DNA of 63,996 nt, the filler included, from Pelomyxa schiedti (lineage: Eukaryota > Protista > Evosea), in assembly GCA_020536535.1 (NCBI GenBank). It is 10 parts of 10 records of this genome, joined end to end, with 100 filler letters (N's around TTAATTAATTAA, not from the genome) between each part and the next. Parts side by side here need not be neighbours in the genome. Positions count along the whole stretch, not along the records: positions 54,657 to 57,979 come from JAHLWZ010001767.1; 9 more parts are not named here. One strand, given 5' to 3'. Position numbers and translations under genes: made by a program. Positions within the stretch are counted from its first letter, which is position 1. Each line of letters opens with the position of its first letter. Below, in pieces: positions 4,093 to 58,079 of this stretch. The notes under the pieces are model-generated. The model did no database searches. It saw nothing but the letters and a program-made list of their open reading frames with translations, and was not told the DNA's origin.

Positions 4093-4279
4093 AAACAAAC
4101 CTTCAGGTTGTGGACCTCACAAGACAACCAAATGGGAGATTGTTGGCTAAAAACGTAGAAACGGGTTTGTAGCAATGCAGGGAAAAAAGTTTTATTGAGT
4201 ACACGAGGAAGTGGGAATAACACTGTACAGTCCCACCCCATTTAAAAAAGAAACAAAAAGAAAAACAAACAAATCTCCC

Positions 4280-54656: not shown

Positions 54657-55296
54657 GCCGGTATCCGTGTTTGTGGCAGTGTCATATTAAAAAAAAAGTC
54701 TGCCGATGCTTCAGTTAATACTGGGATGCCCTGCTTTTTGCAGCTGGTCACAAAGTCGCAGATTGGTGCCGCAAACCACCGGTGATTTCCGTCAAAACAG
54801 AGGTAAGTCCTGGTAGCATTGTCCACTGTCAGTGTACTACACAGATCAGAAGTAACGACTGGTCAACTCCAGTTTTCAACATCGTTTCGACGGATCTGAA
54901 ACACATGTGTGATCTAAGTAGTTTTAGAGATTTTTACTGTAACCTTCGCTCAACCTGTGGAAACTGGAGATACTCCACCTCCTCTGTCCAAGTGACATGC
55001 ATACTGCAGGGAGACTTTGTATATAGTTGCTTTGTGGAACTAGCTTCACTGCAAAAACAGAAAGGAAATAATCCATTTCGAATTAGTGTTGTTGTAGATA
55101 AGGCAATAAACAAGAACCAATAATTATAAAAAGTACAGGAGCTTACCCACGACACATACAGCCTCATAAAAGTGTCCCATTCTGGTACACTAAAATATGG
55201 ATTAACCTGCTTCGTGTTGGTCATTGGTATAAAGGTCTTTCGGAGGACTCTGTGTACTGGGACTTCTGGCCCAGTGAGTCGTTTCTCTCTGTCCAT
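54657..55296 (-). pseudogene. ParB/sulfiredoxin-like N-terminal domain gene, disrupted and truncated by contig end
   Basis: Spliced MDREKR...EYLQFPQ|IRRND..., an in-frame TGA or frameshift, then TYLCFDGNHRWFAA (DGNHR at 54779-54793). Confidence 0.55.
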
Positions 55297-55374
55297 TGGT
55301 TTTTGTTGTTTGTTTTCAAAAAAAACTTGTGTGCAGTGAATACAAAGGCTGTTCCTCAGTGTTTCGCAGTTTGA

Positions 55375-55752
55375 GGGATACGTATCCGAAACTGACTTTC
55401 GGAGATGTGTCCTGAACATTTCCTGTGGGACACATCTCCGAAAGTCAGTTTCGGAGATGTGTCCTGAACATTTCCGGGGGACACATCTCAGAAACTGACT
55501 TTCGGAGATGTGTCCTGCACATTTCTTGTGGGATACATCTCCGAAACTGACTTTCAGAGATGTGTCCTGAACATTTCCGGGGGACACATGTCTGGAACCC
55601 AAATCGGATTTGTGTCCTGCACATTTCCTGTGGGACATGTATCCGAAACTGACTTTCGGCTATGTGTCCTGCACATTTCCTGTGGGACACATATCCAGAA
55701 CAAAAAAAGGGAGTTGTGTCCGGTGCCTTCCCTGTGGGACACGTATCCGGAA
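55375..55752. repeat. Tandem array of ~7.5 x 51-52 bp palindromic units
   Basis: Units start at 55375, 55427, 55478, 55530, 55581, 55632, 55684, 55736. Consensus gGGACACATCTCCGAAA-ctgac-TTTCGGAGATGTGTCC-tgmacatttcctgt. Confidence 0.95.
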
Positions 55753-55792
55753 CCCAAAAAAAAAAAAAACAAAAAACTTTGCTTCCTCCCCT

Positions 55793-57654
55793 ATGAGTAC
55801 CACTCTTCCTGCGGACTGGTGCACCAACATTGATCTATGGAGTGACAGTGCCTATGAGTTGCCACAAAGGAATTTTGGTGGCTTGGTTGGTCCTGTGAAA
55901 CTCTATTCTGGTTAGCAGCACGTCTAACACAGTGTTTTTGCTAAATGTTCTCAGAGCAACTTTTATGCTACGATTTCTGGCGGGAAATATTTGATGAGAC
56001 TTTTTTGCCCATGTAGCAGAGGAGACAAACCGGTGTGGCTAAACGTTTGTTCTTTCATTTGTGCTCTATAAGGTACACACACGAAAATGTTGATGGGTGC
56101 GAGGGATTCACTACTTCTCCAGCTGAAATCGAACGTCTGTGTGGGTTTTTTCTTGCAGGTACCTTTGGCAGTTCGTTGTGTTGTTTTTTTTTTTTTTGAC
56201 GATTGTTACAGCTGGTGTTGTTTTTTCTTTTTTTGACGATTGTTACAGCTGGTGTTTATAATCAAAAAGGATCATGGGGTGAGAACTGGAGTAGCAGTGG
56301 GTCTCCTTGGCCTCGCAGTCTAATTTCCACTCACTCCTTTTTAGGGAGAAATGTTACAATTGATGAAGGAATTATCCCTTTCAAAGGCTTGGTTGGTTTT
56401 TGAGTTTGTATGAGGGACAAACCTCAGGGAACTGGGATTAAAGTATATTTACTTGTGGATGAGTACTCTGCCATAGTTAAGTTCGTAATGTATGACGGTG
56501 ATAACCCCTATGGTACTTTCAATTGTTTCCTTAATTCTTATTTATTTTCACATGGGAAAAAAGGCAACTTAGATTGGAATAAAACTCTGAGGTCTCCTTT
56601 TTTTCAGCATTTGAATTTGACTCATGTACATTTTTTTCTACAGCCCACTTCTTGTCTCACTTTCTGATTTTAGGAATCCCTGCATCCAACAGAAGCAACT
56701 GTGTACTCGCTGTTGAGTGCTGTCCATTGGTGCCAAGCAACTAGACTTTGTATGGACCGGTATTTCCCGATGGCAAACCTGATGAGGAATCTGCATAACT
56801 CTGGTTTCGAGTTTGTAGTTATCATCCAAAGCAGCAGGGCTGGCAAGGTTTGTGTTCTTAATGCATTCACTGTATTCACAAGTCCCACAGATTTTTTCAC
56901 ACATTGTTGTTCAGCCCGATCCAGAAGTGGAATGGGATAAGTGTGAATTTCATTTTTCTATGATGAAACAGCATCCAGTTGGACTTGAATATAGACCTAG
57001 TGTGGTATACAACTACCACTTCAACTATCACAATGTTGACTGGGTCAACCAGTTGCGTAGGTACTACAGCTTTGTCATACTAACATTCTTCCAAAAAAAC
57101 CAAAAACACAAGATGTGTGGCCCGTTATTCCGTTGACCAGCAGCAACACAAGTGGACAACAAAGTGTTCCTGGTTGTTTTTGTTGTGGGGAACGCACCAA
57201 GCCCGACTGTTGTATTGTGCAGTCAATCACTGTCGAATTAGTATGAGGGAGTTTGTGAAGGCAGTATGTTATTGCTTGTGTTTGTAATTTCTTTCTTACA
57301 TCTTGACCACAGGTTGTCACAGTTATTGCTTCCAAGTTTATTTGTCCAATGATTCTTTTACTGGACCCTTTCTCTCTATTCAATGACCGGGCTCCGTTAT
57401 TGAAGCCAGTGCAGATTACACCGGATAATTGCTATCACAGGTTTAAGGTGTCCATTTCTTTCCATGCCCATTGCAAAAACAGAGGGAAAGTACAGCATTG
57501 TATGCTTTGCTGGTTGAATGCCCACCGGTCTAATACTTATTATTACTCGTGGCAACACTCCTCTGCTAAGCTGTGTTGCTGGGAAAGTGGCACGACAGAA
57601 CACACCTGTCTTCTACACAAACTGAAAGTTGGTGGCAGGCTCCCACAAGTATAA
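55793..57654 (+). mobile_element. piggyBac-like (DDE_Tnp_1_7) transposase gene, intron-containing and internally deleted
   Basis: HVAEETNR/Y, EIERLCGFFL, NVTIDEGIIPFKG, MRDKPQGTGIKVYLLVD, CMDRYF, RPSVVYNY..YHNVDWVNQLRRYY, Cys/His-rich C-terminus (HCMLC..LCC..TCLLH). Confidence 0.85.
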
Positions 57655-58079
57655 ATCCCACAAAACAAACGAGTTAAAAAAGAAACGAGCCGGAGTTCAT
57701 TGGTGGCTTGAGTAACTTGGGGTGCACCGATAGGGGGCATCAGTGTGAAAAACATGAAAAAACATCCAAATTTCATCCCCGTTAGGAGCCCCGGCAACGA
57801 GCGGAGTGTGCCGTACAACGCAAAGAGATATGCAACGAGTGAAAATAACACCGTTCTGGTCCAGTGATTATTTTATGCAGGCATTTAAGTTCCTGTTAAT
57901 AACTAACTCTCAGCAGTCAGTGTTTGTCCCTGAGGCTCTCTTTCACACAACTCACCAACTTTGAGTCTCAGTCACTCTCNNNNNNNNNNNNNNNNNNNNN
58001 NNNNNNNNNNNNNNNNNNNNNNNTTAATTAATTAANNNNNNNNNNNNNNNNNNNNNNNNNNNNNNNNNNNNNNNNNNNN

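Follow-up and report, generated by a model that had tools for sequence, protein, structure and literature searches.

Three features fill a 3,323-bp piece of the genome of Pelomyxa schiedti (Archamoebae): a minus-strand gene that I will call the accessory or DGNHR gene, after a short motif in its product, an array of long palindromes, and a plus-strand gene resembling piggyBac transposases, with the two genes diverging across the array. The piece (42.8% G+C; JAHLWZ010001767.1) occupies positions 54657-57979 of the window, by which I mean the whole stretch of 63,996 nucleotides, joined from parts of the P. schiedti assembly GCA_020536535.1, and all coordinates below count along it unless a contig is named. 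Candidate start codons at 55296 (minus) and 55793 (plus) lie 496 bp apart, and the region between them (55297..55792, assigned to neither strand), a putative divergent control region, is 96-97% conserved in a second contig of the same assembly. An earlier sequence-only reading had described an interval of some 500 bp, mostly palindromic array, between divergent genes, and this description stands, since 379 of the 496 bp are array, built of 52-bp units.

The palindrome array (55375..55753, no strand) was delimited by Tandem Repeats Finder, which reports a period of 52 nt in 6.1-7.3 copies at these coordinates with a nested period of 103 nt, and by unit-by-unit reading, half-site counting and folding. 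Written out, it comprises eight units, each made of a 37-bp palindrome (a 16-nt arm, a 5-nt centre and the inverted arm) and a 15-nt spacer, the arm being GGACACATCTCCGAAA, the centre CTGAC or GTCAG, and the spacer TGAACATTTCCTGTG and variants of it; units 1-4 and 6 are well-formed palindromes, and units 5, 7 and 8, towards the transposase gene, have degenerated or are rich in A. A scan of the whole piece for the half-site GGACACATCTCCGAAA returned 13 occurrences at three or fewer mismatches against 0.04 expected, all of them inside the array, and two adjacent units taken as single-stranded DNA fold at -42.8 kcal/mol (z = -13), so that the array is real and far beyond chance. Its sequence is found nowhere else in the element, the ends included; the exact palindrome pattern was not matched in collections of metagenomes or prokaryotic genomes, and a word-index search with the array and the exon-1 frame gave no candidate. 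The period of 52 bp, about five helical turns, would place successive palindromes on the same face of the helix. The possibility of an RNA gene in the array, or in the end block described below, was considered and rejected, Rfam having returned sub-threshold look-alikes of microRNA hairpins in the former and nothing in the latter.

The arrangement recurs. Two sister contigs from the same assembly were compared with the window copy, L001, which carries Pelo_18996 (P0001), and L002 (4,414 bp), which carries Pelo_18026 (P0002), and these sister copies are 94-97% identical to it. In L002 the order is again transposase, array and DGNHR gene, with the two genes divergent; colinearity with the window copy starts at the edge of the DGNHR gene, spans the array and reaches into the transposase, at 96-97% identity in the aligned blocks. 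The array is retained in both copies with a variable number of units, L002 having six, or 102 bp (two units) fewer than the eight of the window. In the window, 79 bp separate it from the putative start codon of the DGNHR gene, and it adjoins that gene in L002 too, where the adjacency is confirmed by the public annotation, since the first 61 residues of the model Pelo_18026 (L002:1520-1702) are a translation of the array, joined through a doubtful intron to a piece in the wrong frame; this is an annotation artefact, and the N-terminus of the model should be read as a warning. Pelo_18996 was the sole protein matched by a 105-residue piece of the transposase in a word-index search, and L001, the contig that carries it, matches window positions 56790-57516 at 94% identity and is unrelated to the family upstream of 56790, so that it has no bearing on the array or the DGNHR gene. 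The non-family sequence (L001:1-659) includes a GTT/GTG-rich low-complexity stretch at about 60-190, and L001 represents either a copy truncated at its 5' end or a chimeric contig.

Both copies end in the same block in opposite orientations. Block B (57638..57831, plus strand), a putative long terminal inverted repeat of 194 bp, starts 14 nt before the stop codon of the transposase and ends ...CGCAAAGAGATAT; its counterpart in L002 (3726-3919), 96% identical and sharply bordered, runs in the reverse direction with respect to the remainder of the element and begins 15 nt beyond the DGNHR stop codon. Similarity stops at ...AAAGAGATAT, after which the window continues with GCAAC and L002 with CTGGA, and the outer flank of the window copy (57832..57979, no strand), taken as host DNA, is unrelated to the flank in L002. 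No short terminal repeats, no TTAA and no short repeat shared outside block B were found in the flanks of the window copy or of L002. The bases ATAT stand at both borders (window 57828-57831, L002 3916-3919), preceded by CGCAAAGAG, and a reader coming from outside would meet ATAT and then CTCTTTGCG. The L002 flank beyond block B also holds G-rich repeated motifs at 4130-4260 (GGGGCGAAATTTTT... and GGGCGGGGCAAAGGGCAAAAA). Because the inverted 194-bp block lies outside both stop codons, a single two-gene mobile unit is favoured over chance adjacency, and the unit can probably be reconstructed as inverted B, the DGNHR gene pointing left, the array, the transposase gene pointing right and B again, some 5-5.5 kb in all when deletions are allowed for. 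I consider it quite probable, judging from this layout, that both genes and the array form one such unit. The sequence-only reading had asked whether the three parts recur together in the same order, between inverted repeats and TTAA duplications; L002 repeats all three parts, and the end blocks of 194 bp are inverted, but TTAA is absent from the observed borders.

Each copy has decayed in its own way. The window copy and L002 differ by 3-4% and by over ten indels, the longest about 450 bp, and their deletions are not the same. In the window, the transposase gene has a 1-nt deletion at 56000, one of about 227 bp at 56329 and, by comparison with L001, another of about 220 bp at 56979, and carries a TGA at 56401-56403 where L002 has CGA; the DGNHR gene, compared with the sister copies, is missing 32 nt following 54890 and a single nucleotide following 54833. 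L002, for its part, is short of 102 bp of array (two units), has deletions of 2 nt and 5 nt in the putative exon 1 and is missing about 450 bp of the transposase. In exon blocks that align cleanly, about 5 codon differences between the window and L002 are synonymous and 10 are non-synonymous, a ratio indicating neutral decay as expected of dead transposon copies, and the window copy reads as one of these. The earlier claim that both genes contain spliceosomal introns and that both are decayed is thus upheld by the GT-AG borders given below and by the indels and the TGA seen against the sister copies.

These same observations weigh against an account that I regard as improbable, namely that a piggyBac-like element happens to lie beside an unrelated gene or a second transposon, that the window copy and L002 are two haplotypes, or two assembly versions, of a single locus, and that the inverted block of L002 is an amplification chimera. 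The assembly was produced from single cells amplified with GenomiPhi, that is, by multiple displacement amplification (PMC8887013), which makes amplification chimeras a real caveat, and inverted block B could be one; the two-gene layout, moreover, is seen in only two contigs, the window and L002, each with one end and without the other, and L001 is silent on two of the three parts. However, the divergence between the window and L002 is similar to the distance of either from L001, the outer flanks of block B differ between the two copies, and the junction 15 nt after the DGNHR stop codon in L002 neatly mirrors the start of B 14 nt before the transposase stop codon in the window, where a random breakpoint would be unlikely, and this argues against a chimera.

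The broken transposase gene (55793..57654, plus strand) was traced by reading from an ATG at 55793 to a stop codon at 57652-57654 through about eight exons with GT-AG borders, placed approximately at 55793-55910, 55955-56032, 56073-56158, 56249-56512, ~56645-56846, 56915-~57060, 57113-57263 and 57313-57654. Short GT-AG introns in such number agree with the figure reported for the P. schiedti genome, 7.4 per gene (PMC8887013). In the third intron (56178-56251) a 37-bp unit, GTGTTGTTTTTT(T/C)TTTTTTTGACGATTGTTACAGCTG, is tandemly duplicated so that the acceptor site is doubled; L002 is 22 bp shorter there. Read in order, the conserved blocks are ETNR..., F.G...G, IDE..PFKG, KP..GIK, Y.G, MDRYF, P..V.NY....VD...Q, KW and C-x2-C, an order that I take to match that of the T. 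ni piggyBac protein. The first belongs to a longer block, FWxEIFDETFFxHVAEETNR, which is intact in L002, and further blocks read F..SPAEIERL.GFFLAG; NVTIDEGIIPFKG...RDKPQGTGIKVY...Y.G; LCMDRYFPMANLMRNL; YRPSVVYNY...NVDWVNQL; and HKWTTK...LLY, and RFWELNRVLHY and the block preceding IDE are present only in L002 (657-883). Comparison with the frames of Pelo_18996 and L002 points to candidate catalytic aspartates, on the plus strand, in TIDEG (~56355-56369), CMDRYF (~56746-56763) and NVDWVNQ (~57034-57054), the distances between them being about 80-90 and about 103 residues by reading, with L001 supplying the part deleted in the window; the aspartates of T. ni piggyBac are at 268, 346, 447 and 450, with spacings of 78 and 101 (PMC5381638). 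Towards the C-terminus lies a Cys/His-rich tail (~57430-57620, plus strand, by reading), which reads ...QHCMLC-x12-S-x2-H-x4-LCC-x9-C-x2-H over 57307-57651 and by eye fits a decayed C-x2-C...C-x2-C...C pattern. From this block order and aspartate spacing, the plus-strand gene is likely a piggyBac-type transposase with three catalytic aspartates (DDD) and a C-terminal Cys-rich domain.

The accessory gene is present only as its 5' part (54657..55296, minus strand), cut by the contig edge at 54657, and its structure follows from the reading frames and from comparison with Pelo_18026, whose annotated model likewise has GT-AG introns. A candidate exon 1 (55296-55147) opens with the ATG at 55296, runs for 50 codons to a GTAAGC donor and is out of phase with exon 2 (~55048-54955) in both the window and L002; an alternative start is the ATG at 55002. 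After a 41-nt GT-AG intron 2 (54954-54914) comes exon 3 (54913-54657), which holds the core FQIR ... YLCFDGNHRWFAA. The stop-free minus-strand frame at 54659-54862 reads ...LTVDNATRTYLCFDGNHRWFAAPICDFVTSCKKQGIPVL... (TRTYLCFDGNHRWFAAPICDF), and upstream in the same frame stands ITHVFQIRRNDV (VFQIRRNDV); owing to the losses of 32 nt and 1 nt, this core is out of frame between the two lesions. Pelo_18026 (461 residues) gives the fuller reading ...VEYLQFPQITHGFQIRHLEQGAMGHLVDTMLKTGVDQSLLPICVVPLTADDATRTYLCFDGNHRRFAAPICDFVTSCKKQGIPVL... and is 93% identical to the window core in a representative-library search for which the decayed 68-residue motif piece was the only query. Six weaker matches to that piece were rejected as homologues, since repeats of beta-propeller proteins (CFDGTHVWVAN) inflate their scores. 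The accessory protein is, to judge from the gene models, of about 400 residues and without detectable relatives: Pfam finds no family and no enzymatic domain over the whole of Pelo_18026, a word-index search with residues 66-400 returned only the protein itself, and relatives were found neither in JGI metagenomes nor in IMG/VR viral contigs. Its tail is rich in S, T and K with an acidic end, and in the C-terminal region (L002:2930-3130) a short tandem duplication encodes RHLPSNPLRRTYHPVS twice.

The N-terminal part of this protein carries the features that raise the question of ParB. Published signatures of the ParB/Srx fold take the form DGQHR, DGQQR or F(G/S)GCHR, each preceded by a QR (PMC4619093), and the accessory protein shows a strand, Q-x-R, a helix, a strand, h-h-D-G-N-H-R-x-x-A-A and a further strand, a pattern that fits them. 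A hydrophobic strand leading into D-G-x-(H/Q)-R, with Q-R further upstream, is there both in the window (YLCFDGNHRWFAA) and in Pelo_18026 (QIRH...(48 aa)...YLCFDGNHRRFAA), where QIR stands about 48 residues ahead of FDGNHR; this is a likeness at the level of a motif, weak when taken alone. The only positive lead beyond it is a neighbour list from a protein language model, in which 3 of 30 entries are ParB_N clusters and one is DUF3723. No helix-turn-helix, GxxRxxA cytidine triphosphate-binding box or ParA partner is evident for the accessory gene. That the protein adopts a ParB/Srx fold is therefore a tentative proposal, on the strength of its motifs, to which I would give somewhat less than even odds.

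Putting these parts together, I favour, with a probability of roughly 55%, the reading that the window holds a dead copy of a family of two-gene piggyBac-type transposons, about 5-5.5 kb long, with an accessory protein bearing a ParB/Srx-like signature and a central palindrome array. The whole unit would be moved by its transposase, and the array would serve as a shared bidirectional control region for both divergent genes, with both promoters in or beside it. Since phased long palindromes are the type of site to which dimeric DNA-binding proteins bind, I infer that the array is a docking site for such a protein encoded by the element, most plausibly the accessory protein, which would be the likelier binder if it is ParB-like, the alternative being the DNA-binding domains of the transposase itself. 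KorB-type proteins repress divergent promoters via palindromic operators. In the same manner as KorB and ParB on such operators, and as has been proposed for the algal protein PAG3 discussed below, the bound protein might regulate both genes at once or mark the element. The fullest form of this idea, in which an archamoeba transposon of the piggyBac superfamily encodes an accessory protein of true ParB/Srx fold together with its own parS-like array, made of phased 37-bp palindromes within the divergent promoter, and thereby binds, regulates or marks its own DNA, asks for more to be true at once, and I think it unlikely.

Beyond the small number of contigs and the manner of their amplification, several results weigh against the favoured reading, and they touch each of its parts. 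On the side of the transposase, all three copies have N where piggyBac has D450 (NVDWVNQ or NVDRVNQ; window ~57034-57054, L001 ~1123-1143, L002 ~400-420 minus), a change that may be ancestral to the family rather than a lesion of decay; neither the window copy nor L002 shows a TTAA at its one visible boundary, the border bases being ATAT, which could be a duplicated target in place of TTAA or part of the repeat; and the terminal repeat, at about 190 bp, compares with 12-19 bp in piggyBac-like elements (PMC5381638). A Pfam scan (24,736 models, DDE_Tnp_1_7 included) of separate exon-sized pieces from the window, L001 and L002 gave nothing at E<=10, and phmmer against the PDB with the transposase pieces taken singly, short as they are, matched no chain, those of piggyBac included; such blank exon scans are uninformative, because 20-60 coding residues are too short to reach significance alone. 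An atlas search of one transposase exon likewise gave no usable match. The sequence-only reading had called this gene a piggyBac DDD transposase, and by block order, aspartate spacing and Cys-rich tail it does read as one; the TTAA and the short ends of piggyBac-like elements were not seen at its borders.

Other results concern the accessory protein. A DGxHR pentapeptide is expected by chance an estimated 0.5 times in a six-frame translation of a window of 58 kb, so that the motif by itself is weak. Hidden Markov models from Pfam, NCBIfam, PHROGs and PADLOC, run against the core and the whole of Pelo_18026, gave no match to the ParB clan at E<=10; phmmer against the PDB found no ParB/Srx match, and tblastn against phages and plasmids found nothing significant. 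Two single-sequence AlphaFold2 models have a mean predicted local distance difference test score (pLDDT) of 37.2 and 37.8 and are unusable, and their Foldseek matches (E>2) are meaningless. The assignment to ParB/Srx in the sequence-only reading is accordingly reduced to a short motif. Finally, the two arms of the palindromes have decayed separately, changes in one not being compensated in the other, which argues against a hairpin RNA or a cruciform being selected for and is compatible with protein half-sites or with neutral decay.

It is here that another explanation finds its footing, in which the unit is real, the accessory protein is an orphan second open reading frame (ORF) unrelated to ParB/Srx, and the array is an internal minisatellite or a bidirectional promoter, which the transposase (through its N-terminal or Cys-rich domain), host factors or nothing at all might bind. 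Every profile and structure test for ParB/Srx being negative or unusable agrees with it, as does the fact that the sole distant matches to the motif are the spurious beta-propeller repeats, and the array, too, behaves like an ordinary minisatellite in varying in unit number (8 versus 6) while its arms decay without compensation. I nevertheless hold this explanation to be the less probable one, because the order of Q-x-R, helix, strand and h-h-DGxHR-xxAA matches the published ParB/Srx signatures, because ParB_N clusters appear among the language-model neighbours, and because algal transposons are reported to combine a ParB-like gene with a palindrome array in the same way. If the ParB reading fails, what is left is an ordinary, previously undescribed family of two-ORF piggyBac-like elements in a poorly studied genome.

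If the two-gene reading with a self-binding accessory protein is correct, it widens the known cargo of a widely used transposon family, and should that protein have a true ParB/Srx fold, it would be the first such case both for piggyBac and for Amoebozoa. Canonical piggyBac elements encode the transposase as their only product. The superfamily itself is no stranger to the Archamoebae, a piggyBac-like element (PBLE) having been reported in Entamoeba invadens (PMC5381638), and the Pelomyxa element by reading resembles PBLE, T. ni piggyBac among them, in the block order of the transposase, in three candidate aspartates at similar spacing and in the C-terminal Cys/His-rich domain, and also in being a cut-and-paste-type element bounded by inverted repeats. 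Unlike PBLE, which has one ORF, it has two genes, each with several introns, and its palindrome array is central rather than subterminal; its inverted ends are about 190 bp against 12-19 bp, its borders ATAT against TTAA, and N replaces the equivalent of D450.

With the bacterial proteins ParB/KorB, DndB (DGQHR) and GmrS/DUF262 (DGQQR), the accessory protein shares D-G-x-H/Q-R after a hydrophobic strand and the upstream Q-R, and, as with ParB/KorB and their parS or OB sites, clustered palindromic sites adjoin its gene. No significant sequence or profile similarity to these proteins was found, and the Pelomyxa palindrome is 37 bp long with a 5-nt centre as against the 16-bp parS.

The closest parallels come from algae, and they answer the remark of the sequence-only reading that it did not recognise the arrangement from described families, since ParB-like genes beside tandem inverted-repeat arrays have been reported in red-algal Plavaka transposons and a ParB-like gene in the Sola1 of Ectocarpus. 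In Plavaka, HHpred gives the N-terminus of the product of Plavaka accessory gene 3 (PAG3) a weak likeness to ParB (E = 0.29), arrays of tandem inverted repeats adjoin the gene, and the authors propose that the protein binds to its own element (bioRxiv 10.1101/2025.02.11.637652); Ectocarpus Sola1-1 carries a gene for a ParB-like protein joined to a DNA methyltransferase on the strand opposite the transposase (PMC12477816). The Pelomyxa element is like Plavaka PAG3 in having, in both the window and L002, a tandem inverted-repeat array beside an accessory gene inside a transposon, and like Sola1-1 in having that gene on the strand opposite the transposase. Were the fullest form of the idea to hold, it would suggest that a ParB-like protein and a palindrome array make up a recurrent module, acquired on separate occasions by eukaryotic transposons of unrelated superfamilies. 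A piggyBac element with a self-binding accessory protein would also carry a pairing noticed only in 2025 in giant algal transposons over to the Amoebozoa and to an element of small size. Unlike the algal ParB-like domains, which are fused to a 2-oxoglutarate-dependent (2OG) oxygenase or a methyltransferase, Pelo_18026 has no enzymatic domain that could be found, and unlike the algal systems, which are giant and belong to Plavaka/KDZ, Sola1, Zisupton and Mutator, the Pelomyxa element is small, piggyBac-like and housed in an amoebozoan, so compact, with one palindrome and two genes in about 5 kb, that the proposal of self-recognition becomes directly testable in it.

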